Source: Geosiphon pyriformis uo1
Taxonomy: Eukaryota > Fungi > Glomeromycota
Direction: 5' to 3'
Assembly: GCA_016748015.1 (NCBI GenBank)
Contig: JAAOMT010000684.1
Span: 124,001-188,000 of the forward strand
Length of the DNA stretch: 64,000 nucleotides
Below the pieces are notes generated by a model. That model had not been told where the DNA came from, ran no database searches, and was given only the letters and a program-made list of their open reading frames with translations. Each line of letters starts with the position of its first letter. Position 1 is the stretch's first letter. Below, piece by piece: positions 1 to 50,872 of this stretch. A program made the position numbers and the translations under genes.

Positions 1-3000
1 AAAAAGCTTGAAAGTTTAATCAATTTAATTTTAAGATTATTTAACTTAAAAACAACAAAAGTATAAATATTAAAGCTTACAGTTAGTATATTAGTAACTT
101 TTATAAAAAAAACATCTAAAATTATATTTGAATTAAAAGCCAGTATCAAAAAAAATATCAGTCTGTAGAGAAAAAATGACCAAAAACAATACATTAAATT
201 TGGAAAACATACTTAAAATCTTATTTAATAGTAGTTCTAAATTTTGCTTAAATATATTCAATCTTAATTTCAAAGTCAAAAACCCAAATTTTAAAAAGGT
301 TTTATCTAAAGTGTACTTAAATTATTATTATGTTCAAAAAAATAATTAAAAAAACTATTTATACTTAATATTTTTTATTAAAAACAATCAAATATAAAAT
401 ATAAACATTTTTTTTGCATAAAACTAACAAGTTAAGTTTAATTTAAATCTGATAATATATGTTTAACAAATTTTTGGTTGAACTTTTAAAAAATTATATT
501 TTAATTCAATATAACTAAAATATTTACAATTTTTATAGTAAGTTTAATTTAAGACAAATTAATTTTACTAAACACTAAAATTATACAATAAGTTTTATTT
601 AAATATTTTTTAGTTTTAAAACAAATTGTAATATATCTTATTTTATTATTAATAATAAAATTATAATTAATAATACATTTATTTTTCTTATAATTTTTTG
701 TTTTAGCTTAATAAAATATAATTAAATTAATATTATCTTATTAAACTTAAATACAACTATAATAATTGTTTTTTTAAAAGCATTTATTAAAATTTTTTAA
801 CAATTATTACTAATTTAAATATACAGAAAATTTTTTAAAATTATTATTTACCAAAATATTTTTATTTGTAATTAATATTATAGTTTTTTTTAAACTAGTC
901 TTTAATATAAACATAAATCTAATAATTTTCTAATTTTTTTTAATAATTTATAAATTAATATTCAAAACAAAATTATTTTTTAATAATTATTTATACTAAC
1001 TAATTAAATTTCAAAACAATAAAAAAAGTAGATAGAATTAATCTTTTTTTATTATTAAATAGAAAAAATACTAATTTATTGGTATTTAATCTTTTTGCTT
1101 TTAAAATATTTGTTTAAGAGATCAAAAAAGTTTTACTATTATTATCTGTTTTAAATCTAATATTAATTACTATAAGTCATTTTATCTTCTTTTTAAATTA
1201 GTTTTTATGTTGTTATATTTCTTAATATTAGCCAAACTTTTATCCAAAAACAAAATTATTTGAGTTTTTAATATTTTTATTTATGTTTTTTGGCTTTTTT
1301 ATAAAAGTATTATCAATAAAATTATAATTAATTCTTTTTGTTACCTTTTTTAAATATATTGTTACTAGTAGTAGTTATTAGTTTCTAAACAAAAAAATTT
1401 GTATTTTGTAAAAGTATTAAATAATAAAACAGAAAAAAACAAAAACTTTTTTTTTTAAGAAATTTGGAGAAAAAAGAAGTTTTTTTATTTTATAGATAGT
1501 AATTAATATGTATTTGTTAAATAAAATAATAATTAATAATATATGTTTTATTTTTATTTAAATTAGATAATTTTATATATTATATAGCTTAATTTATATA
1601 TATAAATTTTCTTTAATATTATCAATAATTTTGTTTTTAATATTTCAAATTTTTTTATCTTTTACTGTTTTTATATATATATTAATAAAGATAAATTATT
1701 TATTTATTATTATTTTGTATTAATATATTTGATATATGTTTTTTGTTATAATTTAATAAGTTGTATCTTAAATAATTTTTTTAATAATATTATAAATAAA
1801 ATTCTCTATAGTTTTAATAAATTTTTTTATTGTTTTTGTTAATTTTATTAATTTGGCTAAGTATTAATCTGAAAATATAATTGTTATAATAGTTTAAAAA
1901 ATTAATTTATTATTAATTTAATTTAATGTTGAACAATAAAATTAATTTATTACAAAAACAAAAAAAAATAATATTATATTTATTAATTATTAAAAGTTAT
2001 TATTTGTTAAAAATTGAAATTTATTTTTTTAAGCTAAAAACTATTTATATATATACATATTCGTAATAATGCAAAAGAATAGTGTAAAAGTACTATTTAA
2101 AAACAATTATTAAGTTATAACAACTATGTTAAATTATTTTAAGTTATTTTATATTATTTTATATTATTATAAATTAATATTTTACAATAATTATTTGTTG
2201 TAAATTATTTTTAATTAAGTTAATTACTGTGCTAATTATATAACTAGTTAGTAAATAATTTAATTATTAATTTGTATTTGCAGAATTTTATTTAGATAAC
2301 AATAATTACTTCTTTATTAATGTTTAAAATTTAGGTTTAATATTTTTGTTTGTAATAATATTCTCTTTTTTAGTTAGTTTAATTGCAATTATTTTCTTAG
2401 ATTCAAATCAGAATAATATTTCTAATTTTTAAAAAAATAAACATTTTTTTAAAAACTATTAATAATATTGAATAATTTTTTAACTGTTAATTTTTTATAA
2501 ATTAAAACAAAGATGTTGTTTTTTTTAAAATAATTATGAAAAATCATCTTAATCTTTATATTATTAAAGCTTTTATGTTTAAAGAAGATTAAAAATAATT
2601 ATATTTAACAATACAACTATTTTTTAATTTGTATTTATATTTGCAAAGATTTTATTATTGCTGTAACTTAAATTGGAAATTTTGTTATTATTTACATTTT
2701 GATTAGGACGGTAATTCGTAATTGGTGCTTTTTTGCAAAATTCAAATAAGTAATAGAAAAATTAAATAATAACAAGAAAACAGTAGACTTTTTCTTAGAT
2801 GCTTTGGTTTTTTTGGTTATTTGTATTGTAATTAATAATAGAATTTAAAAAAATAATAGTTTGGTTACTAATTTGTTGTTAAAATTCTTGGGATTTTTAG
2901 CAGTTATAGTAATAATACTAGAGTTATTTTAAGTGTATTTTTTAATTAATAACAGACTTTTAATAAATGCAAATAAATTGTTTTTAAAGTTTTGTTTGTT

Positions 3001-3400
3001 TCTAAAATATCCAAAAATGGTATCTTTGTAACAGTTTGTTTATTTATCTTATTTTTTGTTTTAATTATGATTATAAATTTTAAAGAAAAAAATCATTTTA
3101 TATATTTAAATATTAAAAAAACTTTATTTACATTTTTATTAAAAAATATTATGTAAATAAAATACAAATAATAAGAGTTATAAAAAATACATAAATTAAA
3201 TTATATACAGTATTTTAAACTTTACATAATTTATAAAAATTCAACAAAATTAAAGAAAACATATTAAAACTTTATTTTTAAAAATAAAAAATTCAAAAAT
3301 AATTGCTAATAACAAATTAAATTCAGTTTATCATGAAAAATTTCGGTATTTAACAACAAATTTTTAGATATTTAATGAAACTATTATAGTAAACTTGCCA
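1..3400. other. Extremely AT-rich, C/G-depleted block, probably heavily mutated repeat/transposon-derived DNA
   Basis: No ORF of 60 aa or more; G and C are rare and CpG is almost absent; composition normalises near 3.4-3.7 kb. Confidence 0.55.
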
Positions 3401-3694
3401 TTATCTTTGAAAACAAAAAGAAAAAAAGTATTTAATTAATGTATTGAAATTTACAAAATCAACTGAATTTACAAGGAACAATATATATTATTATCGAAAT
3501 TAGGACTAGAATAACATATAAATAGAAGGCTATTAGCATACACCCAACTAATAAAAATTAATTTACATTCCACTTGCAAATATAAATATTATCAATAACA
3601 ATAATAATAATACTTTTAATAATAATAAAATAATAAAAATTTGTGTTCATCAAAAGATTGCATCATCAATAGACATTAGTATGCAAATTTTTCA

Positions 3695-4400
3695 TGGGTA
3701 CACGACAGCCAATCATAAATTCGGGTGCATTTTCCACAAAAAACGGCTTAGCTATTCGACTTGCATACTTGGGATCGTTATCTTCTTGAAAGCGTCACTT
3801 CTTCCCAAGTATTCCATTAAATTCCCAACATCTGGTACAAAATTTCAAAATAAAGCCTGGCATTCATGATACGCCGAAAATAAATTGGACAAACTGGCAA
3901 TTTTTCTCTGTGCAAATGTTCAATTGTGTTTGGCAACAGTTGAAACGCTGTTTCATCCAAAATAACGTTTTTTTCAGTCATAAGCATTGAATAAACCATA
4001 TATCTAATATAAAGCTTCCATATGCTTCACCAGTCATACGTGAAAGAGTACGAATCAAATGATTCAATTCTTGTCCGCTAATCCATCCACTTTTAACAGT
4101 CGCTCGTGTATAATCAGAGTTGTAAAGCTCTCTTTTATGACAGCATGCACAAAAATTTTCATGTAAATTGGTGCTTATAAAGGATTCGTCTGTCAAAAGA
4201 ACACATTGCCAATCCTCTTTGATTTAATGATTGTAGGTTTTAGTCCATTATAACAATGATTTCTTTAATTTTAATTGTTTAAGATGATCTTAACACAATT
4301 AGTGGACCATCCAAATTTTTACACCAGACATACCTTCTTTCTTGAGCATTTTTACCGCAAAAAATTTATTTTTACAAAGATCTTTTTGGGGACCCATTTG
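3695..4400 (-). mobile_element. Degenerate Tc1/mariner DDE transposase relic (copy 1)
   Basis: The minus strand gives VILDETAFQL (first catalytic D), IMNARLYFEIL and, after a frameshift and stop, RFQEDNDPKYASRIAKPFFVENAPE, matching the Tc1 FQQDNDPKHTS motif. DNA-level similarity to 25410-25640. The upstream boundary is uncertain. Confidence 0.8.
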
Positions 4401-5824: not shown

Positions 5825-6812
5825 ATGAATAATGATTTTAATTCTAAATTGTTAAAAGTTGGGTTGCCATCTGCTATTCATTCTGCCCCTTTTCCTCCAA
5901 AAATTACGTCGGATGAATTGATGGCAAATTCACTCGAAAAATTGAAGAAAACTGGGAAAATTGGCAAAGTTCCAAACGCTTTTATGGCCTATCGCATGGC
6001 ATTAAAGAAAGAAATCGCTGAAATGGGATTTCGTCCAACCATGAGTGAATTATCTTCTCTAGCTGGAAATTTATGGGAGAGAGAACTTGAGCATGTGAAA
6101 AATGCCTATTCAGCTATCGCGCAGGATGCAAAGGTTCGTTTCGAAAAGGAATGGTACATAAAGGAAATACAAATTTACCAGGTACGTACTGTATGAGACT
6201 ATTTTTTAAGACCCCTCTGATTATCGAATTAAATTGTCTGATCAGATGTTTTTTAAAAAATGTTCAATGATTATCAAATTTCAGTTTGAAAGCTCAATCG
6301 GTCATATCTCTCAGGAATTCGAAACCAACGCTATGCCTGAACCTGGCGCAAATTCACTCCAAGAAATTCATTTTTTTGAGAATTCAAATGAAGACCCAAT
6401 GGCCAATTCCTCAAAACCATCTCTTCCACTCCTTACAAATTCTTCCGATTTCAATGACCAAGAACTTATGACAATTGGTCATAGTAATACAACTGAAAGA
6501 AATAATGAAACTTCTACAATGATTCCTCTCTATGCCCAGGGAATTCCAGCAGCTGTCAGACAAGACAATTGCTTCATGGGTCAGGGAATATCTGGAATTG
6601 TGAGTCAGGAAGATTTGGTTTATTTGACAAATTTTGATAGTCGTTTAATCTTGCTTGAAACCATGGTGATAAAATTGCTCTCAGAACGAAACTACACTTT
6701 GTCAGCAGTCTTGCCTATTGATGACATAGATCGTATTGCTTTTCTTGAGCAACTTGTTGCTGTGTTGTATGCTGAACCACAACAACAACAACAACAACAA
6801 CAAGAACATTAA
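5825..6812 (+). CDS. MATA-type HMG-box transcription factor, paralogue 1 (exons 5825-6181 and 6285-6812, ~294 aa)
   Basis: PNAFMAYR...LSSLAGNLW...VKNAY HMG box. A GT-AG intron at 6182-6284 joins the two ORFs in frame. C-terminal poly-Q. Confidence 0.92.
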
Positions 6813-6827
6813 CAACAACAACAACAA
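6780..6827 (+). repeat. Interrupted (CAA)n tract spanning the HMG1 stop codon
   Basis: caa repeats before gaacat-taa, five more caa after it, then tga. Confidence 0.9.
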
Positions 6828-7530
6828 TGAAAGCATATGCAAAATACCTTTAGTGTTTATTAATTAAGTTTTAAAGATTTTAAGTAAAGTTTAGAAACCC
6901 ACATTACGAATGAACCATTTGAAAGAACATTCTTTTCAAAATATTAAGATTTTTTAAGGTTTAAATTTTCCTCCCAAGATTTTTTTAAGCAATTAAGTTT
7001 TTGATCAAATTACATTATCTAGTTTAACATGTTAAAAGATCAAATATTTAGAATAAAAATGCATATATGAATAAAAATAAAAAGTTTTTGATATAATCAC
7101 TATGCGAATCTACTTGATTTCCTGTTCTAAAATGTTATTATGGTTATTTTTATTTAGAATGAAATTTTTTATTTTTATTAAGATTTATCTTGGCTAAATT
7201 TATATCAATCAACAATATCTCGAGTGATTTTCGCTATTTTGAAAAAAGAGGATATGATGTCATAAATTACTGTGTGATATTTTTTTTTAGCAATAATTAT
7301 CCCATTGTAATAGATTTATCACACTTGCCAAGAAAAATCTTTAGATGAATAATCAAGAAAATGGATCGTCGTTAACCCAGCCTCCTAGAAAAACGTGACC
7401 AAAAGCAAAATCATATGTGATAAAGGCAATAATAAACCAATTTTAAAATAGTATTTCAGATATTAAAAACCTTTTTTTTTTCTATCAGAGTTTCATTGTT
7501 ATAATTAATAAGTTGGTTGTTTGAATTAAG

Positions 7531-7532
<2 letters not shown>

Positions 7533-7588
<56 letters not shown>

Positions 7589-7610
7589 GTTATTGTTATT
7601 ATTATTGTTA
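7533..7610. repeat. (ATT)n microsatellite
   Basis: Long attattatt array with a few gtt variants. Confidence 0.95.
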
Positions 7611-8173
7611 TCAGTTTTTATTAACAAATTCCTCGATTAAAAATAACGGCCAATCGGCATAATTTGAGACTTAATATATATACTGCCAAGGATTAAAAAA
7701 ATTTAATCTGGAAAAGCGGTCCAAAAAATTGGTCCAAGAATAAAGAATATTATAACCAAATTCTTTTATTAGCAGCATGTATATCAAAAAAAAAAAGGTT
7801 AACCTTGCTAGTAACTCTGTTAATTGAAGAATGACAAACATGGGTTTGGTAATCTTGGATAAAAGAATTTTCCTACGCTAAAAAGTTTGTATAACAAAGT
7901 CGATCATGAATTTCTATTTTTGAATATATTAAAAAAAAAAAGCATAAATACAAAAGAAATGTTTTGACTTTTGAAGCAGAACGTTGGGAAATTTTCAATT
8001 TAAATGTCAAAACTAACTTGAAATAATTTATTTATATGAGTAACTTTTAATTTTTGAAGCCTACTTTTTTCATTTAAAATCTCCACTGAGAATTCAAAAT
8101 TTTTTTTATAATCTTATTTCCGGTAAAATAGAACCCATATTCAAAAATTTTTTCAAGAATCCTTCCATTGAAA

Positions 8174-9088
8174 ATGTTCAATCAATCCCAGACTTCTTCT
8201 CAATTCATGTTCTCATCTCCATATATTAAACCGGACTTCCCTCCGGATCTTACTCATAAAGAATTATTGGTCAATGCACTGGAAAAATTAAAAGTCACTG
8301 GAAAAGCTGGTAAAACACCAAACGCTTTTATGGCCTATCGAATGGCTCTTCGAAAACAAATATCCAAAACTGGATTTCGACCAACAATGGGTGAACTCTC
8401 GACGATTGCTGGAAATCTTTGGGAAAGTGAGCCTCAAAATGTCAAGGAAGCTTATCAAAAACTTTCACGTGAAGTAAAAATAATGTTTGATGAAATGTGG
8501 CAAAAATCTCAACAAGTAAAATTGGTGAACCCAATTTCATCAAATCATGCTATCGAGTTTAATCCTCAACACAATTATATACCATCCAATCAAAATTCAG
8601 AAAATTTTACCACGGAATTTCAACTTTTTGATTATGAATTATTATCTTTTGAACAATCTCTTGCAGATTTAGAAACCTCAGAGCAAACAAATATTCAATA
8701 TCAACTAAAACTTCCCTTAAATTATTCAGAGAAGGAGGAATATATTAATTCATCATTCCCAAATCAGTCTCAAATTGAGCAAATTGATTTAAATCTATCA
8801 TCTTCGGATTTCTCTGATGAATCACAGATGGAATTTTCTCCAGAAATTTATAATAATAATAATAATGAGCCATTTATGAGCTTCGCTTTTAAGGATAATG
8901 CCTTTGAAAATATCTCCGAGATTAGTCTAGAGTATCGAGTATCAATACTTGAAATTTTAATTAAAAACCTTTTAATACAACATAAATTTAATATTAATCT
9001 ACATGATGCTCTTCAGGGAAATGTAGCGCAAAAAGTAGCAGTGCTTGAAAATCTCACATATGAATTCATGCTGAAAGCGCAGAATTAA
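8174..9088 (+). CDS. MATA-type HMG-box transcription factor, paralogue 2 (intronless)
   Basis: IKPDFPPDLT...GKTPNAFMAYR...LSTIAGNLW...VKEAY. First ATG is at 8174; the ORF track starts at TTG 8168. Confidence 0.93.
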   Translation: MFNQSQTSSQFMFSSPYIKPDFPPDLTHKELLVNALEKLKVTGKAGKTPNAFMAYRMALRKQISKTGFRPTMGELSTIAGNLWESEPQNVKEAYQKLSREVKIMFDEMWQKSQQVKLVNPISSNHAIEFNPQHNYIPSNQNSENFTTEFQLFDYELLSFEQSLADLETSEQTNIQYQLKLPLNYSEKEEYINSSFPNQSQIEQIDLNLSSSDFSDESQMEFSPEIYNNNNNEPFMSFAFKDNAFENISEISLEYRVSILEILIKNLLIQHKFNINLHDALQGNVAQKVAVLENLTYEFMLKAQN

Positions 9089-10644
9089 AATTTTATAAAT
9101 AGTATTTGAAAATTAAAAAATTAATATATTAGATGTAAAAGCATTCACTTTTTTTTCTCTTTTAATATAATTCACCTAAAAATTTTATAGATTTTATATG
9201 CGTAATATATCCTAAGAATCCTATGATTGCTTTCCATTACCACACTTTCTGATCTGGAAAATATACATTTTTATGCTCATGAAAACAAAATAAAAGCTAT
9301 TATATATGATTAAAAATCATTTTTTAAAACAAAACCAACTTTACATAAAAGCTGTTATATTTGATTAAAAATCATCTGTTAGAAAAAAAAAATTTTCTAG
9401 AATTTTTTTTTAATATTATAATATTGCGTCATATAATATCATTTATTGTGCACAAAAAAAAATACCGCTTGCACCTTTTTTTAGGGAGTTATATATTCCC
9501 GGGATGCCAGAAAAGATTACTAAAGGATTACTATTCTTGGGTGTGTACCATTTAGTTGATCTTCATTGACGAAAAATCAATATTTGCGTATGTCATATGA
9601 GTCACGTAATTGAATTATTAATACCCAAAAAAGATATTAAAAATGATTGTATCCCGTCAATCATCACCATTTTTTTTCATTCTTTAACGGCCTTCTGATT
9701 GGTTTCTCACTTGATAAATTTCGGCACTTTTTTTTTGATTTCAAACAATTCTTATTGAATTATCTCATTTTGGTTTGGATCACTTTATCATAATAAAGGA
9801 AAAAAAAAATTTAAAAGCATTCAATAACGAAGATATTAAAGGTTCATCATATGTTTACCAATGAATAATTTTCAATTCCTTTATCTTCTTGAAAGTGGCA
9901 AAACCTTTAAGCAAGCCACCTAAACCACAATCTAAGAAGTGCAGAACTTGAGGTAATTGTATCTCTTAATTAATGTACAGTTGTAAGAAATTATGCAATT
10001 CCTATCCTATGAACAAAAATTATAATCTACACTGAAACAAGTCTCACAAATTAAACCTTATTCAAAAAAAAAATTCGCGAAATAAGAAGCCCTAATAGTA
10101 AGAATTTTTCCTTCAAATTTAAGTAAATAAAATCAATATCAAAAATTACTAAAAAAATTTTTAACCAAAAATCTCGAATTTGAACCCAAATAAAACTTGT
10201 ATTTTGATGAGGCTTGAAAATGATATAACGTAGATTGCTAATTCTTGAACCACTACAAATCATCTTTCAATAAAGTGAATTGTTAATTCCCTTTTTCATG
10301 TCAACCCTTTATTGTTGCGTTTTCTAATAATGGGTTAAAAGAGAAGATATTGAAATGCTTTAATATGGTGTTTTTCATAATTTTTTATTCATAATTTAGA
10401 GATTACAATGTTCAAATTGACATTTTTAAAAATATAAATACCTACGCATTCACTCTTTAATTTAGCAGGGTAATAACTCCTCACAAAAAATGAGATTTTA
10501 AAAAAGATTTCATTTTTATTGAAAATAAAAGCTTGCAACGATCCATCGCTAAAAACGACCTCTCTATCGTATAAGTTCATCAAGCCTACTTAAAAATTTC
10601 TGATCCGAGATTTTCTAAGTGAAAATAAACCCAGAATATCTCAA

Positions 10645-11598
10645 ATGTCAAGTTATAGATCAAAAATTCCATCAGGCTCACTTTCTTCGCTTTTTATCAA
10701 GCCCGACTTTCCTCCCGATCTCACCAAAGAAGAAATAATTTCTAATGCCCTTCAAAAACTTCAAACTACGGGGAAGGTTGGTAAAACACCAAATGCTTTT
10801 ATGGCTTATCGAATGTCTCTGAAAAAACAAATCGCCAAAACTGGATATCGACCTACAATGGGAGAAGTATCCACCATTGCTGGAACCTTATGGGAAGAAG
10901 AACCAGATGATGTAAAAGCGGCCTATCAAATGCTCACTTATGAAGCGAAAATCTACTACGAACAAATTTGGCGTTCATATAATCCGTTTCAGATCGTCCA
11001 GGTTCAACCAAACAACGTTGTTAATGTAGAATCACAAAGTTTAGCAGATAACGTTCGGGGTTACCACTTTACTCCTACTACTTATTATTCTGTAAATGAA
11101 TTTAATAGCTGGGGAGAGCAACCCACCATAATTACGGACTCGCAAGGCTCCGATGCGTCGAAAAATTTATTCCAAAATAATCTACCGTTGAACAATTCAG
11201 AAGCGGAGCCTGCAATTGATAATAATAACTTTTGCGGTAGGGTTTTAAAAAAACCTGCATATGATTCTGAAACAATTGATCTTGGATTTCCCACATTACA
11301 AGATCAATCCGAATTCAGCTTCTCTCAACTGCATACCATGATGGGAGAATCAGACACGACAACTAGTTTGCCTTGGTGCGAAGAAGGAGCTACATTCCCT
11401 TGGTTTTCCGATATTTCTCCGATTATGACCCCCAAAGAAGAAAATAATTTTGTAAATAGAGTAGCGATACTTGAATGTCTGATTGAAAGTTTGCTACATG
11501 ACCGAAAGTTGATCATGCCAAAACCATTCCCGGAAAATTTACTTGAAAAAGTGTCACTTCTTGAACAACTGACGAGTACGCTTCTTAGCCAGCCATAG
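10645..11598 (+). CDS. MATA-type HMG-box transcription factor, paralogue 3 (intronless)
   Basis: IKPDFPPDLT...GKTPNAFMAYR...VSTIAGTLW...VKAAY; 317 aa ORF. Confidence 0.93.
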   Translation: MSSYRSKIPSGSLSSLFIKPDFPPDLTKEEIISNALQKLQTTGKVGKTPNAFMAYRMSLKKQIAKTGYRPTMGEVSTIAGTLWEEEPDDVKAAYQMLTYEAKIYYEQIWRSYNPFQIVQVQPNNVVNVESQSLADNVRGYHFTPTTYYSVNEFNSWGEQPTIITDSQGSDASKNLFQNNLPLNNSEAEPAIDNNNFCGRVLKKPAYDSETIDLGFPTLQDQSEFSFSQLHTMMGESDTTTSLPWCEEGATFPWFSDISPIMTPKEENNFVNRVAILECLIESLLHDRKLIMPKPFPENLLEKVSLLEQLTSTLLSQP

Positions 11599-12899: not shown

Positions 12900-14807
12900 A
12901 TGGAGAAATCATCCAGAATAGAGGAAAGCATGGTAAAAGAAAATTTCTATTTGGTTCAGCATCTCAATTAACTGAACGTGTTTGAAGAATTGAAGATCTT
13001 GTTATATGTCTATAATCTTTGAAGAAGAAAATTGCTTTCAAGTCTGAGCCCACTAGCCGTTTTAAATTAAACCTTGATCAGGCACAAAGTCCTTTGTCAT
13101 TACTCACCTCTCTAAATAAAGCACAAGGTATTATATCGTTGTCTAAATAATGAAAGTGGAAACATTGTATATATGTAAAAAAATTTAAAAAACCATTATT
13201 CGGTTATATTACTTAAACCTTGATCTCATTAGCTCTCACCTTTGGATGTGCATGGCTTGGTTGGACCTTGAACTCTTTTGATTTTGCAATCTTAATCTAT
13301 GCTTTACCTCATATTGCTGAAGAATTCGATATGAAACCATCAGTGATTGCTTCAAGGTAAAAGATTCTTCTCAGTTTTCTTTATCTAACAATTCAATTTA
13401 ATTCAATTCCATTCATTTTCTCATAAAATTTAACAGCATCACTATCACTTTGTTATTTCGACCGCTTGGTGGCTTAATATTTGGTATAGCTGCAGAACGA
13501 TGGGGGAGAAAATATCCCTTAATGATAAATATAATTTTATTTAGCATGCTAGAACTTGCTTCTGGCTTTGCACCTAATTTCAAAGTATTCTTTGTTTCAC
13601 GTGCCCTTTTTGGGATCGCGATGGGCGGAGAATGGGGGTTAGGTGCAACTTTGACTATGGAAAATTTACCAATAGAAACCCGAGGGTACAAATTTTTTGA
13701 TTTAGTATCAAAGGGTTTTGTATACTAACTGGTTTTAATAATACTAATAATAATATTCCTCGTCAAATTTAAAGATTTTTTTCTGGAATCTTACAGCAAG
13801 GATACCCAATTGGTAGTTTACTAGCTGCTGCACTTTATTATGCTGCGATAAATTCTCTCGGTTGGCGAGCCATGTTTTGGATCGGTTCATTCCCGGCACT
13901 TCTTGTAGTCATAATACGAATTTGGGTGCCAGAATCAGAAGTTTGGCTTCAACAACGTGATCAGCAACGGGTCAATGTGGAGAAATGGTCACAAAAAATC
14001 AAGCAGTTGATAATCAATCATTGGGGAATATTTTCTTATGGAATGCTTCTCATGGGTTCTATGAATTTTTCTCGGGGTATGTCTGCATTACAGAGTACCT
14101 CTAAAACTTTTGTGAATTAATTAATTTTTTTTTTAATTATATATAGGTGTATATGACCTATTTCCGACGTACTTGAAGATACAAATGGGATTTAATCCTA
14201 GAGAACTATTTCTTAGCTCACTGGTTACATGTGTGGGAGCTATTAGTGGTGCGCCCATATCTGGATATTTCTCCCAATACTTAGGACGTAGGCGAACCAT
14301 AATAATTCTCGTGATTCTGCAGACATGTTTTATTCCATTAATTGGATTGGCACAAAATTCTTTTGTCATTATAACCGGATATTTTTTTATCTTTTTTTTT
14401 AATCAAGTAAAAATTTTCTACTTTAGAAATTTCAAAATTTAAGTTACCAAAATTTATTTGAAAATTTATATATTTATTTTCTCAATCAATAGGGCTATTG
14501 GGGAATAATTCCAGCCTATCTTAGCGAAATAGCACCACCATCTGTACGCAATGTCTTTGTCAGTTTAACATCTCAAACCGGCATTCTATTTGGTTCTTAT
14601 ATGGCACAAGCTCATTCTCAATTGGCTGAGAAATTTCCGCTGTCCGATGGGAGACCAAATTATGCGGTAGTTCAGGCAATATCCCTCGCCATCGGTACGG
14701 TATTGGTGGTTACAATTTCTGCATTTGGAAAGGAAGCAAAAGATATCAACTTTAGACAAAACACAGAAGAGAAGGAAAATCTAGAAATAAAAGACATGAA
14801 AATCTAG
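12900..14807 (+). CDS. MFS carboxylate transporter, Jen1/sialate:H+ symporter (SHS) family, multi-exon
   Basis: Exons encode WLGWTLNSFDF, LFRPLGGLIFGIAAERWGRK, RALFGIAMGGEWGLGA, GILQQGY, GRRRT and WGIIPAYLSE, separated by GT-AG introns. The start at 12900 is tentative. Confidence 0.88.
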
Positions 14808-14968
14808 ATTCTAGACTAAAAAATAATCTTATCATTGGTCACTGATCATTTGATGTTGAAAATATTTGTTTCTAAAAATACTCACCAATAATAAAAGTAC
14901 ACGTTTGCATGTTAAATATAAATAATGTTTCCATCCCAAACTACTTCATCCAACGTTAAAAATTATCC

Positions 14969-17796
14969 ATGTTTCCAATTGAGGAATTCGATTATAACAA
15001 GCAAACAGTTATTCTTCCAGGGAGCAAACAACCTGGACAAACAGGTTAAAAACTGAAAGTCCCTATCTATAAATTATTTTAAAACATGAATTGATTAACC
15101 CTTCAATTATTTTCAAAGGAATATATAGAAATGCTCTCTCACCGGATAAACTCATTAAAAAATGGCACCCTGAAATCAGCACTATGTATGAAAATTTCCA
15201 ATATGGTGAGTAAACTGAGCGCTTGCAAATTAATACAAACAAAAAAGGATAGGTATTTATAAACATTACAATTTTCGTTATCAAGCTCTTAAAAAAAGGC
15301 CAGATAATCGATGCTTAGGCCACCGTCCATTTAATCACCAAACTAAGACTTTTGAAGATTACTCATGGCAAACTTATGCTCAAGTTCATGAAAGATTTAC
15401 TCGGTTTGGTAGTGGATTATTACATATAAGCGAGCATGTCATAGGAAACCGTGGATCGACAAAATTTCATGTGGCAGTCTGGTCTCGTAATCGCCCCGAG
15501 GTAATTTTCGTTATTTTCTCGATTAATTATGAGTATCTAAAACAAGCTCTTCATTCTCTCTCTAGCACCATATTACAGATCAAGCTTTAGCCGCCTATAA
15601 TCTTGTTTCAGTACCTCTTTATGACACCGTTGGCACTGAAGATCTTGTTTATTGTCTGAATCATGCGGAAATTCCAATTATTGTTTGCTCGGCAGACCAC
15701 TTGGTAAATTTGTTGGAAGTAAAAGATCAGATTCCTGGTTTGAAAGTGATCATTTCCATGGATGACCTCGTTCAAATCTCAACATATGCGTCAAATCCAG
15801 TTTCATCATATTCAATATCAGACTCCCATAAGGCATGGGCCTCTAGCAAAGGTGTTTCCCTCTTTAACTTTGTAGAAATAGAGAATATTGGGAAGGAATA
15901 TCCGCGGGAACACATTCCACCAAGGCCGCAAGATCTCTTTCTCATCATGTACACTTCAGGCACAACCGGAACATCAAAAGGAGTCATGATGACTCACGAA
16001 AACATAAATTCTGCATTGTCTGGCATTGCTGCCAATCTACCTTACTCTGACCTTCAAATTATAATATCTTATTTGCCACTTGCTCATATTTTTGGTCGTC
16101 AAGTTGAAGCGATTGTTATTCAAGCATGTGGTGCTATTGGTTATTATCATGGCGACCCTTTAAGCCTTCTTGAAGATGCGCAGTTGTTGAAACCTACTCT
16201 TTTTGCCTCTGTCCCTCGTTTTTGGAATGCACTTTACTCTGCTATTGCACCAATTACCTTTGACGCTAAAGGCTTCAAGGGTGCACTTGCACGCCGTGGT
16301 ATTGCAGTAAAACTAAGCAATCTTGAACAATATGGGACCATAACCCACCCACTTTGGGATCGTCTGATGTTTAATAAGATTAAAGGACTTCTTGGTGGTA
16401 ATGTAAAACTAATAATAACAGCCGCAGCTCCAATTGGACGAGATATAATTCAGTTTCTCAGAATTGCTTTTGGTGCGGTGGTACTTGAAGGTAATTCAAG
16501 GGAAAACCTCTAAACTTTTGATTGATCCTCATGTTAAATGATTTCAATTCATGTTAATTAGCATATGGCCAAACTGAGACGCACGGTGGTTCATGCATCC
16601 AAGGTTTGTTACCAAACCTTTTACATTTAAATATATAATATATGAAATTAATCATGATTTTTGAAAAGTTTATGGTGACATGTTACCGGGAAATGTGGGA
16701 ATCCCCTATGTGAGGTAATGAAATTTGGATCTCCTTTATGTTGTAAATTCTTTCACCTTGCTTATGAGTTAGGTTATTATTAAAGTTCAGAGATAAAGCT
16801 TGTTGATATCCCATCAATGGGATATACAAGTGAAGATAAACCTTACCCTCGGGGAGAAGTGTGTGTCCGTGGCCACACCCTGATGACAGGCTATTTCAAG
16901 GACGAAGAAAAAACTCGTGAGACAATCGATCAAGTAAATCAGCGTTTATTCGACGTTAACTGAGCCGTGAAATTTTGAAAGTGGATTAACTTTTATTCCT
17001 TTGACTATAAAAAGGAAGGTTGGCTGCATAGTGGTGACGTTGGGCATATTGACGAACGAGGATGTTTAGTTATCTTTGATCGTGTCAAAAATATCTTTAA
17101 ATTATCACAGGGCGAATATATTGCCCCTGAGAAGGTATAAAAATAGAGATAATTGGGTTTGATTGTTTTTTTTGAAGGTCAATTTAATTGAATCTCTTTA
17201 TATTCAGATTGAACAAGTTTACCTTAGGCTTCCCATTATTGCACAACTGTACGTCCATGGTGACTCATTACAATCCGAATTAGTGGGCATACTTGTTCCT
17301 AATCCCGATAACTTTGTGCCCTGGGCCAACAAGGAAATTATTGGTGAGTATAATTTTCAAACGCTTGTAAAAGATAAAAGAGTACAAAAGGCTTTATTGG
17401 AAAAAATGAATCAAATTGGACGGCAGAGTGGATTAAGAGGGTAAGCATATAATTGTGCAAGTTATTCTTGAGGTCAAAGGATCAAAAAACTTGTTCCTCT
17501 AATGATTTGTTTCTTTCAAATAGGTATGAGCTGGTGAAAAAGATTTTTATTGAGATTGAACCATTTTCAATCGAGAATGGCTTGTTAACTCCTACGTAAG
17601 GCCCTCTCCTATTAATACAAAGCTTTGCAGGTTCCAGTGCTTCACATTTCTCATCAAAAAAAACATTCTCGTTTCTAGGTTAAAAGTGAAACGTCAAGTT
17701 GCCGAAAAAAAATACAGGACACATATTGATAAAATGTATAAAAATAAAGAAATTTTATCATTATCAAGTCCGTCTCTCAATCTCGCAAAGTTATAG
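14969..17796 (+). CDS. Long-chain fatty acyl-CoA synthetase (Faa/ACSL family), multi-exon, C-terminal PTS1 (AKL)
   Basis: AMP-binding [74 protein letters not shown]; the last exon ends NLAKL-stop. Confidence 0.95.
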
Positions 17797-20030: not shown

Positions 20031-23000
20031 TATGAGAAAAAAATATTGTTCATGTATAAAATTAGAAGTTGAAAAATCAATACTTTTAAAGACAATTCTT
20101 CTCTTTTTATACAACTAATCTGATAGAATTTAGTCAACAAACAAAAATTTACAATTGGACCTCTCATGATCGATCGCAGGCATTGTTAACTAATGTGACG
20201 TCATTAAAACATCTAAGTAGTTCTCTTTATGGTTAATTATTAACCCTAAAGAGATCCATTAAAAGAGATCTGGATCACAATTTTTGTTATCTTCAAATGA
20301 ATTTTGCGATTTGGATAATTTTCTTTTAATCGAGAAATTAAGTTCAGAGGCTTAATAGAAAACATATCATAAAGAATCTAAAATCGCATGATTAAAATTT
20401 ATGAAAATATGTGACCTGAAAATAAAAATCATGAGATTCATTGTTTTTAGGATCGTTTATTAAATTGTTATTTAGTAGTTTCTCTACAACGAGATATTTT
20501 AAACCTTTCTCAGATTGGGCTCTCAACTTGATGGTATCTTTTTATTTTTAACGAGTTTGACATATTTCAAGGTAAAATTCCTTAAATAATAAACATATGA
20601 ATAGAAGAATCGATAGATTATGTTCATGGTTTATTTACATTAATTGAATCGTATCGAGAAATTAAAAGAACTTATGCAATTCTAAGTCAAATTAAATTGA
20701 TCTCAAATTATTGGCATAATATATGCTATGATGACATCGGGTAATTATTTTACATATTTATTTTTGTGTAGCAAGACTTATTATGACAATATATCTAAAA
20801 TATCTTGAAGTGCACTATTAATGCTGAGTAGACGTTCAAATTTTTTCTTTTACCTTTAAGCGTCATTGTTAAAAACATTCCGAAAGATTCAATTTAGCAA
20901 AACGTGTCATTTGAAAATGTGCTTAGAAATTAAGTAAGACAATAGAACAAAAAATTGGTCCAGACCACAAAATTAAGCGATCAAAAGATCTTTTAAATTT
21001 AATATGTCAATGACTATTATGTAAGTATTAATAAAGGAGATAAATAAGCCGGAAGTCTGGAAAAATCTGAGGACGTCAAAAAAAACTCGGTACAAATATG
21101 ATAAAAAGATCTAATTTTGTTTCTTTAAGCTCTCGCACACTTTTCGGTTAATGAAGTTACCAATTAATCCCAAGAGCAACGTCAGCCTAACACATATAGA
21201 AAACATACTTATAAGCAACCAAACAATGCCTTCATGATAAATGCTAACCCTAATCAGTTGTTGGGATAACATAAACTCCTTAATAAACAATGAAATCTAT
21301 AAAAAGTCACAAAAGTGTTTAGTTGTCATGGATCCAAATAGAATATTAGACAAGCGGATTTCTAATGATTCACATGAATTCATATTGACTAAAATGAAAT
21401 TATGCAATCTCTTACTTACGCTAATGAATAGAACAGACTCAAGTCCTTCGCGGAAAACGAAAACAAAATAAAAAATAAACAATGCTGTTTTTTTTTGTTT
21501 TTCCATGGCAGATCTCAATTTGCTTTCCTAATGACAATCATAGCAATCAAAGTGAACATTCCCTTGGAAGGGGAGATTGATAAATATTCTGAAGAAGGAA
21601 AAAGTGCCGAAAAAGGAAGGCATCAGTCTTTCGTATTATTAGACTGGGTTTGGGATCAAGAACCCCGATTCATTAGGTTTTTGAATTTTATAGGGTTTAA
21701 TGATGGCGTAAAAAAAATATAAAGATTGCGCCAACGAAAATAGCAAAATAGTTTAAGCTAAATTTTCGGCCCAGATTTATTTTTTTAAAATTTATCACAA
21801 AGCATCGTTATTCAGGTACAAAAGGGAAATTAAAATCACAGAAAATAATGAGGCACTCACTGTGGGATATTAATTAAAAACAAACTGGGAGAAGGTAAGA
21901 AAATGCGATTCGACTTTCCCTCGAAAAATTTTTGAACTAGACACGCTTGATTGTCAAACAATGGTCTCCATTTAAGGCAAAATAAACAATTCAATGATCT
22001 TTTTACATGAATTGAAAAAAGTTTGTTAAATATTAATGAAAAACAAATGCTGTCATCTGCAAAAGAAAAAAGATTGGTTAATTGAAATAATTTTCTTGGT
22101 ATTTCTTATAGAAGGTGGAATTTTTTTCTAATAATTCAAGTCTCAAAGAAAATCCTGTTCATTCATAAATTCTTCTTTAAACTGAAATTTTTTTTAAAAA
22201 GAAATCGTTTATTTAGCGCAAGAATTTCTACCAGCTTACCCTCTAATTTTTTTTAATGTAAAAATGAATTAGGAAATGTTCAACTTTTTTTGAAAAGTTT
22301 TTATTGCTAAATTAGTATTGTAAAGAAACAGACTTCACCTTTCTTCTTACAAGTTTCGATCCTCAGGATGCTTCAGGTTGCCATCAAAAACTGATACCAT
22401 GTTTTTCTTTTACTGAGGCGCTTTTAATGTTGTTTGCATATCAGCAATAAATATTGATAAATTTATAATTCCTTTGGAAAGTTATTTGATTTAACGAAAA
22501 GCAGTAAGACGTATGGGATGCTAGCAATATTAACTTTCGAGTTTTTTGCTTTTCAAGGTAGTATTTTTTTTCAATTTTATAAATTTCTGCTTAAAAGAGA
22601 AGATTATAACCTTAAGATCTAATGATTAAATTTTCTTTGTTTCGTTCTAGATTTTAAACGTTATGATGCATATTTTAATTAGTAGTACTCGAGATTAAGG
22701 GGCTTTTCAAAGCTTAATTTGCAAAAGAGAAAGGTTTAAAATTTGCTCATACTTTTATGTGTAATGACAATAGAAACTAAAAATGAAAAACCTTATTTCT
22801 ATTTTAAATTCTGAATATTTTTTATGTTTTAAATTCTTAATCACATGAATATATAAATACAACTATTAAAACTAAATTTAAACTGTGCTATGTTAAAAAT
22901 CAATATTCTTCAACAGCAAAATAGTTTTTGACATAAAGAGCTGGATGGATCATTCACCTCCGTAAAAGTAAAATATCGGTCAGAAAATGAATTATAATAT

Positions 23001-49615: not shown

Positions 49616-50872
49616 TTAAGATGAAACAGTTGGCTGAAATTGCCCTAAAAAAGCAGTATTACCGTAATTTTCAAATGATTCAATTGGCAGTGAGGGTAAC
49701 TTTATTGTTGATGATTCTTGTGAACAGAGAGTGTCAAAAAAATTGGAGGGAAATTCGTCAATGGTTAAAGTGTCTTCGTCAATCTCAGCCTCAATTGTAG
49801 TGGATTCATGATCGGTTTGAGAAACAAGAGATTGTTTTCGAGATGGTACCGGAGTACTTGTACCCCAAACGTGATTTCCTAAACAGACTCCCAAAGGATA
49901 GGGTGATTCATAGAAGTGAGATTGATTATTTAAAATCGGAGGAAGCAGACAGTAATGGGTATGTATTAATTGTGGCGCTGACGCTGACGCTCGAGAAGAA
50001 ATGGGAGATTTAAAAATTGGAGCCAAGTTAATATTACAGTTTGGAACATCCTTTGACCAGCAGTGAATGTTTTCATCAACCAATTTATTGCCATTAAATG
50101 AAATATTGGAATAAATATTTGAATAGATTGGAGCAATATTTGAAGAATGAGATTCTTGAAAATCATTGATTGAAGTTTGTGAATGCTGAGAAGATTCAAA
50201 AAATCCTTCCGAAAGTTGAATGATTGGAGAGGTTGAGGCTGAGCAGGAGATATCTTGGTGAAAAATCGAATGTTGATTGGTTGAGTGTTCGGTAGAAAGC
50301 GAAAAATTTTCGTTTGGAATGGATCCAAAATTAGAGCTAAGATTTGGGGATAACATTTTTCGTTGAGCAATTGGACGGGCCAGAGCTAAGGGATCAATGT
50401 AAAAGTTCGATCCTTGGGTGATAGTGTTTGAGAAATCATTGATTTCCTGTTGGGAAGGATGATAGTATTCTTGGTTTGATAAGATATATTGTTCTGAGCC
50501 ACGACGAAGATAAAGTTTTTCCGCTTGCAAGGATAAACGCGTGTAAGTATCTTTAACAAACTCTGATTCTTGTTTCCAAGAACGTGAAATCATTGGACTA
50601 AGCTCAGTCATAGAAAGATGAATTCCCTGACTCTTGAGATATTGAACATACTCTGCTCGATAGATGATAAAGGCGTTCGGAAACCGTGCTAAGGTTTTTT
50701 TGGTAGAAATTTTTGAGACCAATCGTTCGGCATCAGTAATTGGAGGAAAAGGTAGAGGAATAGGGGGCAAAACAGTTGTTGGTTTTTTCGTTGCAAACCT
50801 CAATCTATGTTGCATCGTACCGTTTTTTTTATTTGAACCGCCCTGTCTTTTGGTTTCTTTCATGTTTGGCAT
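49616..50872 (-). CDS. MATA-type HMG-box transcription factor (fourth, divergent; intronless, 418 aa)
   Basis: PFPPITDAERL...RFPNAFIIYR...LSPMISRSW...VKDTY; long Ser-rich tail. Confidence 0.92.
   Translation of the reverse strand: MPNMKETKRQGGSNKKNGTMQHRLRFATKKPTTVLPPIPLPFPPITDAERLVSKISTKKTLARFPNAFIIYRAEYVQYLKSQGIHLSMTELSPMISRSWKQESEFVKDTYTRLSLQAEKLYLRRGSEQYILSNQEYYHPSQQEINDFSNTITQGSNFYIDPLALARPIAQRKMLSPNLSSNFGSIPNENFSLSTEHSTNQHSIFHQDISCSASTSPIIQLSEGFFESSQHSQTSINDFQESHSSNIAPIYSNIYSNISFNGNKLVDENIHCWSKDVPNCNINLAPIFKSPISSRASASAPQLIHTHYCLLPPILNNQSHFYESPYPLGVCLGNHVWGTSTPVPSRKQSLVSQTDHESTTIEAEIDEDTLTIDEFPSNFFDTLCSQESSTIKLPSLPIESFENYGNTAFLGQFQPTVSS

Follow-up and report, generated by a model that had tools for sequence, protein, structure and literature searches.

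Three tandem HMG-box genes share a C-terminal tail

The window analysed here, a stretch of 64,000 nucleotides (nt) of AT-rich fungal DNA from Geosiphon pyriformis (contig JAAOMT010000684.1), carries three HMG-box genes that lie head to tail on the plus strand and whose products all end in a module, called the tail below, marked by two motifs of the [R/K]-h-x-x-h-E type. Each product is predicted to be a three-part protein: the DNA-binding head consists of an extension followed by the HMG box; the linker, which evolves fast and is disordered, measures about 140 residues; and a helix-loop-helix of 50-55 residues forms the C terminus. The three are old tandem duplicates of one MATA-type HMG-box subfamily that is expanded in Glomeromycotina. 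Their features are as follows (aa, amino acids; pLDDT, predicted local distance difference test score).

5825..6181, plus strand: gene 1 exon 1; 119 codons, N-terminal extension and HMG box at about 5972-6151, GT donor at 6182
6182..6284, plus strand: gene 1 intron; 103 nt, GTACGT...TTCAG, GT..AG, frame maintained over the junction
6285..6812, plus strand: gene 1 exon 2; 175 aa, disordered linker, tail at about 6624-6779, poly-Q end, stop
8174-9088, plus strand: gene 2; 304 aa, intronless, HMG box at about 8315-8494, tail at about 8918-9079
10645-11598, plus strand: gene 3; 317 aa, intronless, HMG box at about 10786-10980, disordered linker, tail
11431..11502, plus strand: gene 3 tail helix A; residues 263-286, RVAILE at 11458, from AlphaFold2 (block pLDDT 83-86) and heptad analysis
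11539..11589, plus strand: gene 3 tail helix B; residues 299-315, KVSLLE at 11548, from AlphaFold2 (block pLDDT 81-90) and heptad analysis

Gene 1 is the sole spliced gene of the triplet, and its product of 294 aa (119 + 175 aa) has the same length as database protein P0017 (294 aa), residues 26-70 of which are found in the exon-1 frame of locus L003 and the C terminus of which is the exon-2 tail. This gene was searched exon by exon, the exon translations being concatenated only for motif counting and shuffling; the tail profile matches exon 2 with E 5.8e-19. The open reading frame (ORF) of gene 2 opens at TTG 8168 and has its first ATG at 8174. Database proteins P0002 (304 aa) and P0001 (317 aa) match the gene 2 and gene 3 models, and one protein of the same family carries the NCBI label 'hypothetical protein G9A89_004496 [Geosiphon pyriformis]'. 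A run of eight Gln (6776-6805) ends gene 1 directly after helix B.

The Pfam HMG_box family (PF00505) matches all three genes at 29.7-31.2 bits, above the cut-off of 25.4 (gene 1, E 5.3e-7, residues 50-109), with MATalpha_HMGbox as a weak secondary match. For gene 3, AlphaFold2 was run with a 20-sequence family alignment and returned block pLDDT values of 89-98 for residues 21-110, residues 20-112 lying above 90. In a fold search, residues ~40-119 of the model superpose on Sox11, HMGB1, LEF1 and Capicua with Z scores of 7.0-7.8, so that the head is modelled as the L-shaped three-helix HMG fold. A conserved extension of about 30 residues precedes the box in the triplet (5882-5971, 8231-8314 and 10696-10785) and in all close paralogues, with the consensus K-P-x-F-P-P-x-L-T-x-E-E-L-x-x-N-A-x-x-K-L-x-x-T-G-K. 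It lies outside Pfam HMG_box coverage and is modelled within the folded head at pLDDT >90.

The tail motifs are not due to chance

An earlier note on this DNA had reported six tail motifs, and all six are present where it placed them: RLILLE (6642) and RIAFLE (6732) in gene 1, RVSILE (8936) and KVAVLE (9032) in gene 2, and RVAILE (11458) and KVSLLE (11548) in gene 3, at spacings of 30, 32 and 30 residues, respectively. Composition-preserving shuffles of each protein place two motifs within the last 70 residues with P = 5e-5 to 6.5e-4. When a profile built from the three tails was run against the six-frame genome, it recovered four more tails, three of them at E <1e-3 and all four located C-terminally in other HMG-box ORFs. 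With a profile of 17 tails, 14 matches were obtained at E <0.01, every one within an HMG-box ORF (14/14). Because all significant profile matches fall in HMG-box ORFs, the tail is real and, in this genome, coupled only to HMG-box genes. Chance is rejected as the cause of the double motifs in the triplet.

Over 17 double tails, the two motifs lie a median of 30 residues apart, with 14 of the 17 spacings at 26-32 and the remaining three at 22, 39 and 77, the last an outlier of the regular-expression search. The second motif begins a median of 18 residues before the C terminus, and the loop between the helices usually contains Pro or Gly. Across the family, the first motif position holds R in 67 cases and K in 17.

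The tail is modelled as two helices with a heptad register

In the gene 3 model, residues 124-262 are disordered (pLDDT ~40, below 50), forming a linker of about 140 residues, and the tail that follows comprises two confident helices at residues 263-286 and 299-315 (block pLDDT 81-90). Modelled alone, the tail gives the same two helices with a predicted template-modelling (pTM) score of 0.56. The full-length model has a pTM of 0.39 and does not fix the position of the tail relative to the box.

A logo of the 17 double tails reads L(d) E(e) x R(g) V/I/L(a) x x L(d) E(e) x h(g) h(a) x x L(d) h(e), where h is hydrophobic. Hydrophobic occupancy reaches 80-90% or more at the successive d, a, d, a and d positions, R stands at g and E at e, and each helix thus has a core of about five layers. 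Further hydrophobic residues occupy g and e in the second half of the helices, where the hydrophobic face is wider.

The R-hxxhE motif is defined as Arg(g)-h(a)-x-x-h(d)-Glu(e) with Arg and Glu strictly conserved, and is described as a strong trimer determinant in short coiled coils that also occurs in dimers and antiparallel trimers and is effective only inside a trigger sequence (PMC3653964). Four of the six helices conform to this definition (I/L/V/M at a, L/I/V at d, continuous register), namely helix A in all three genes and helix B in gene 1. Helix B of gene 2 (KVAVLE) and of gene 3 (KVSLLE) has Lys in place of the strictly conserved Arg(g). Of the trimer-motif letters on which the earlier note had relied, the exact g-a-x-x-d-e register therefore holds, and the invariant Arg gives way in the second motif of genes 2 and 3.

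Double tails are spread through the Geosiphon genome

The earlier note had treated the module as a property of the triplet, a view that the genome-wide search overturned. The genome (128.3 Mb, 792 contigs) contains at least 82 HMG-box matches, and a scan of all 82 loci for the tail yielded 12 with the double module: the triplet itself (L001-L003) and L007, L008, L011, L014, L017, L020, L021, L023 and L027. A looser, pattern-based count over 77 classified ORFs, in which L010 was included as double and L008 was assigned to the CxxC class, gave 12 double, 7 single and 3 CxxC-plus-zipper tails. About ten further genes have either a one-helix tail or a CxxC pair with a single zipper of 3.5 heptads. 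In the linker of L014, a very long poly-Asn run is apparently spliced out in database model P0004 (312 aa against an ORF of 402 aa).

Half of the 82 matches have another HMG match at most 20 kb away, and tandem arrays are the rule for the HMG family in this genome. One stretch, on contig C541 at 16-86 kb, holds 12 HMG-box matches inside 70 kb (L004, L009, L013, L018, L020, L021, L024, L026, L028, L029, L045 and L053), with double, single, CxxC-zipper and tail-less types mixed. Contig C343 has eight HMG matches.

A sister clade has a tail of another make, in which a CxxC pair is followed directly by one leucine zipper of 3.5 heptads with K at g and E at e. Its members include L018, L025 and L026 (contigs C541 and C704) and the Ambispora proteins P0033, P0041, P0063, P0067 and P0079. 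This CxxC-zipper occupies the same position in the protein as the double tail and follows the textbook leucine-zipper pattern.

Tail carriers concentrate in one half of the HMG-domain tree

A HMMER search with a 13-paralogue profile against 1.84 billion representative sequences returned 1076 matches at E <=1e-3, the best 150 of which were scanned with the tail profile and the motif pattern. Among these 150, double modules occur in Ambispora leptoticha, A. gerdemannii and Rhizophagus clarus, and CxxC-zipper tails are also present in Ambispora. One-helix tails, called by the motif pattern only, occur in Glomus cerebriforme, three Funneliformis species, Diversispora epigaea, Paraglomus brasilianum and Scutellospora calospora. 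All 27 of the 27 looked-up proteins that bear an organism name are from Glomeromycotina; four others are nameless. The tail spans four orders (Archaeosporales, Paraglomerales, Glomerales and Diversisporales). A word-index protein search, run with gene 3 and with the 13-paralogue alignment, returned only 2-3 Geosiphon proteins and is uninformative on distribution.

On an HMG-domain tree of 194 rows (quick IQ-TREE, LG+G4), the triplet groups with an Ambispora protein in a single clade, which has a Shimodaira-Hasegawa-like approximate likelihood-ratio test (SH-aLRT) value of 88. Tail carriers make up 52 of 89 leaves in one half of the tree and 5 of 105 elsewhere, an odds ratio of 28 with a one-sided Fisher P of 2e-17, which overstates independence because the leaves are related. 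The tail characterizes an entire clade within the MATA-HMG expansion, not just the triplet. The window also contains a fourth HMG-box gene.

49616..50872, minus strand: fourth HMG-box gene; 417 aa, Pfam HMG_box E 3.2e-7, distant subfamily without tail

The tail profile finds no match in this gene (49616-50872), in agreement with the earlier note, which had described it as lacking the module, and the tree places it (leaf G_L082) outside the tail-bearing clade.

The triplet is old and its tails are conserved as a pattern

Synonymous sites among the three genes are saturated, with proportions of synonymous differences (pS) of 0.58-0.78. In a DNA repeat search, the copies could still be aligned in two places only, over the HMG box (62-71% nt identity) and over 33 nt of helix A, and no promoter block common to them emerged. 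Because synonymous sites are saturated and so little DNA can be aligned, the duplications are old rather than recent; the same saturation makes the ratio of nonsynonymous to synonymous substitution rates (dN/dS) uninformative. The middle regions, which had been called unalignable, merit that description: forced global alignments of the three proteins give 28-33% identity there, and AlphaFold2 predicts disorder. Tail identity within the triplet is 23-37% overall. What is conserved in the tail is the pattern, L-E-x-R-h-x-x-L-E with its hydrophobic periodicity, and not the sequence, and this pattern persists among the three genes despite the saturated synonymous sites.

Comparison with known domains and systems

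The tail had been described as unannotated, and across ten tails, the triplet included, no Pfam family matches at threshold. Sub-threshold matches comprise poxvirus A27, 'TolA binding protein trimerisation', Sugarporin_N, SlyX, PspB, bZIP_2 and Gal4_dimer. Pfam HLH was not listed for the ten tails at E up to 10, in a search whose HMMER filters drop most matches above ~0.1, and the likeness of the tail to basic helix-loop-helix (bHLH) proteins lies in the helix-loop-helix layout only. Membership of Gal4_dimer (PF03902) was considered and rejected: 3 of the 10 tails (L008, L014 and L023, profile positions 8-27) score 11.4-13.2 bits against a cut-off of 22, and the triplet tails do not match. The Gal4 element likewise belongs to a fungal transcription factor and is a short coiled coil with the pattern L-E-x-R-L-x-x-L-E-x-L; it accompanies a Zn2Cys6 DNA-binding domain instead of an HMG box, and we regard the relation as resemblance only. 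Searches for a structural relative of the tail with Foldseek against the PDB and in the ESM Atlas, by shape and by features, returned generic hairpins or nothing.

Against PDB sequences, the best matches of a 12-tail profile are the reovirus sigma-1 coiled coil (E 0.003) and the GCN4 variant 2o7h (E 0.0035), which we take to be an engineered trimeric GCN4 and which contains LENRVARLEKL. Both matches are at the level of the motif only. A match to an already described domain of another function was one outcome that the earlier note had set against its own proposal; no Pfam family comes up at threshold, and these motif-level matches are the nearest that the PDB offers. The R-hxxhE trimers coronin-1, ccbeta, GCN4p-M3 and the reovirus sigma-1 tail have the same motif letters and heptad register as the Geosiphon tail. 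They are single continuous helices of proven stoichiometry, whereas the Geosiphon tail, known from sequence and a monomer model, consists of a pair of 2.5-heptad helices with a Pro/Gly loop between them, and Lys stands in 2 of the 6 motifs.

Among HMG-box proteins, the SoxD factors (Sox5, Sox6 and Sox13) combine the box with a coiled-coil or leucine-zipper dimerization domain and bind paired sites. The Geosiphon proteins are alike in having one HMG box and a separate coiled-coil element, provided that the tail does oligomerize. The SoxD coiled coil is long and N-terminal to the box, whereas the Geosiphon tail is a short helix-loop-helix at the extreme C terminus of a fungal, MATA-type protein, and we found no sequence relationship between SoxD and the Geosiphon proteins. 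In Capicua, a distant C1 domain reportedly works together with the HMG box, and the two systems share a conserved C-terminal module separated from the box by disordered sequence. Capicua C1 packs on the box and contacts DNA; the match of the Geosiphon model to Capicua structure 7m5w spans residues 43-113, the HMG part, only.

The MATA-HMG expansion of arbuscular mycorrhizal fungi and the SexM/SexP genes of Mucoromycotina belong to the same HMG subfamily as the triplet and show the same tendency to cluster. HMG-box genes of the MATA type are induced when two Rhizophagus isolates coexist, according to a passage of PMC7490403 that cites Riley et al. 2014. Halary et al. 2013 contains no mention of a coiled coil, C-terminal or leucine zipper, and Mateus et al. 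2020 does not contain the word 'coiled'. The literature on this family apparently describes the HMG box only, leaving the tail undescribed. An HMG-box factor with a coiled-coil oligomerization element is thus a known kind of protein, and the present tail is apparently new for the MATA-HMG family.

A model for tail function

The heptad register, the conserved R and E, the coupling to a single type of DNA-binding domain and the replacement by a zipper in the sister clade together lead us to propose that the tail is a small coiled-coil or helical-bundle oligomerization domain that ties HMG boxes together, a reading that we hold to be somewhat better than an even bet. The tail probably self-associates. 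It would tie two or three HMG boxes through flexible linkers, and tethering of this kind would give more avid binding where sites are clustered or paired. It would also let paralogues mix if their tails follow the same grammar. Two geometries can be envisaged. The intrachain hairpin could dimerize into a four-helix bundle, which would fit the wide hydrophobic face at a, d, e and g; or like helices of different chains could align in parallel as a dimer or trimer, which would fit an R(g)/E(e) staple. The stoichiometry, whether a dimer of hairpins or a parallel trimer, and any heteromeric pairing are accordingly given here as conjecture. Because R and E are the same in all paralogues, partner selectivity would need the variable core and the loop length.

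Several observations weigh against an oligomerization domain. At about 2.5 heptads, each helix is short for an autonomous coiled coil, and tail identity within the triplet (23-37%) is not above that of the forced linker alignments. The AlphaFold2 monomer model of the tail is an intrachain antiparallel hairpin that matches generic hairpins only (Z 5-6.6, root-mean-square deviation ~2 Å). A monomeric hairpin was the other outcome that the earlier note had counted against itself; the model does have this form and, as a model of a single chain, is indecisive. Furthermore, amphipathic acidic C-terminal helices of transcription factors are also possible activation or cofactor-docking elements.

That last point can be developed into an explanation in its own right, in which the two amphipathic acidic helices bind a coactivator or corepressor. 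Many HMG and Sox activators have a C-terminal activation element after a disordered linker, and the tail is likewise C-terminal and behind such a linker; an L-x-x-L-L-like stretch is present in each of the three A helices, and the helices form in the AlphaFold2 monomer without a partner chain. However, R(g), E(e) and a strict heptad core are the signature of a defined helix-helix interface rather than of a fuzzy activation domain, the spacing between the helices is held near 30 residues, and the sister clade has a canonical zipper in place of the tail. We therefore regard an activation or docking role as unlikely, if the most credible of the alternatives. Slightly less credible is the reading of the earlier note, in which the triplet forms trimeric homo- or hetero-oligomers that act as a compatibility system. 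The motif stands in the exact g-a-x-x-d-e register of the trimer determinant (PMC3653964), the top PDB profile matches are the reovirus sigma-1 coiled coil and 2o7h, and the weak Pfam matches include 'TolA binding protein trimerisation' and poxvirus A27. Against it stand the second motif of genes 2 and 3, in which Lys is found where the strictly conserved Arg should be, and a core with V/I at a and L at d, a combination that is said, after Harbury et al. 1993, to favour dimers. Because the tail is clade-wide, the three genes are also not singled out as partners, and the motif itself is found in dimers and antiparallel trimers and needs a trigger sequence (PMC3653964).

Two further alternatives seem to us much weaker. 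The tail might act as a module like Capicua C1 and fold back on the HMG box of its own chain, reinforcing the binding of that chain to DNA; in favour are the Capicua precedent and the presence of 7m5w among the fold matches. But that match is limited to model residues 43-113 and excludes the tail, the full-length pTM of 0.39 leaves the arrangement of tail and box unfixed, and the tail has no sequence similarity to C1; we consider this very improbable. We give least credence of all to a leucine-rich nuclear export signal or other short linear motif in which the helix pattern is incidental. The C-terminal stretches are Leu-rich, as this would require, but none of the six window helices has, by eye, the closing hydrophobic-x-hydrophobic pair of the PKI type (0/6), and a linear motif would need far less than a pair of helices, each of 17-23 residues, in which R and E are conserved.

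Returning to oligomerization, the tail would provide a second functional handle on the MATA-HMG family and predicts multimeric, possibly mixing, factors. In arbuscular mycorrhizal fungi, the MATA-HMG family has grown to dozens of copies. At about 55 residues the tail is small enough for a cheap biochemical test with peptides, and tail profiles can split the family into double-helix, single-helix, CxxC-zipper and tail-less members. A bolder extension, which we rate as a long shot, is that the tails of a dozen or more paralogues pair selectively to give a combinatorial network of homo- and hetero-oligomers that reads arrays of AACAATG-type sites. If true, the regulation of a cryptic programme of mating or nucleus recognition would have this network at its core, in fungi in which sex has never been observed. 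The tail alone shows no role in mating or compatibility.

Surroundings of the triplet

AACAATG is the classic Sox/MATA-HMG site. This word is not enriched in the window overall (22 found against 18 expected) or around the triplet. Seven copies lie inside 1.8 kb at 20181-21963, a segment with no obvious small CaaX-ending ORF among ORFs of at least 25 aa. Of the genes that flank the Mucoralean sex locus, neither the TPT transporter nor the RNA helicase turned up in a scan of the eight larger ORFs. Downstream of gene 3, at 13220-14810 and 15701-16513, lie a multi-exon transporter gene of the sugar type of the major facilitator superfamily (MFS) and an AMP-binding (acyl-CoA-synthetase-like) gene. 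The first 4 kb of the window (1-4000) are extremely AT-rich, with a GC content of 12-19% against ~30% in the rest.

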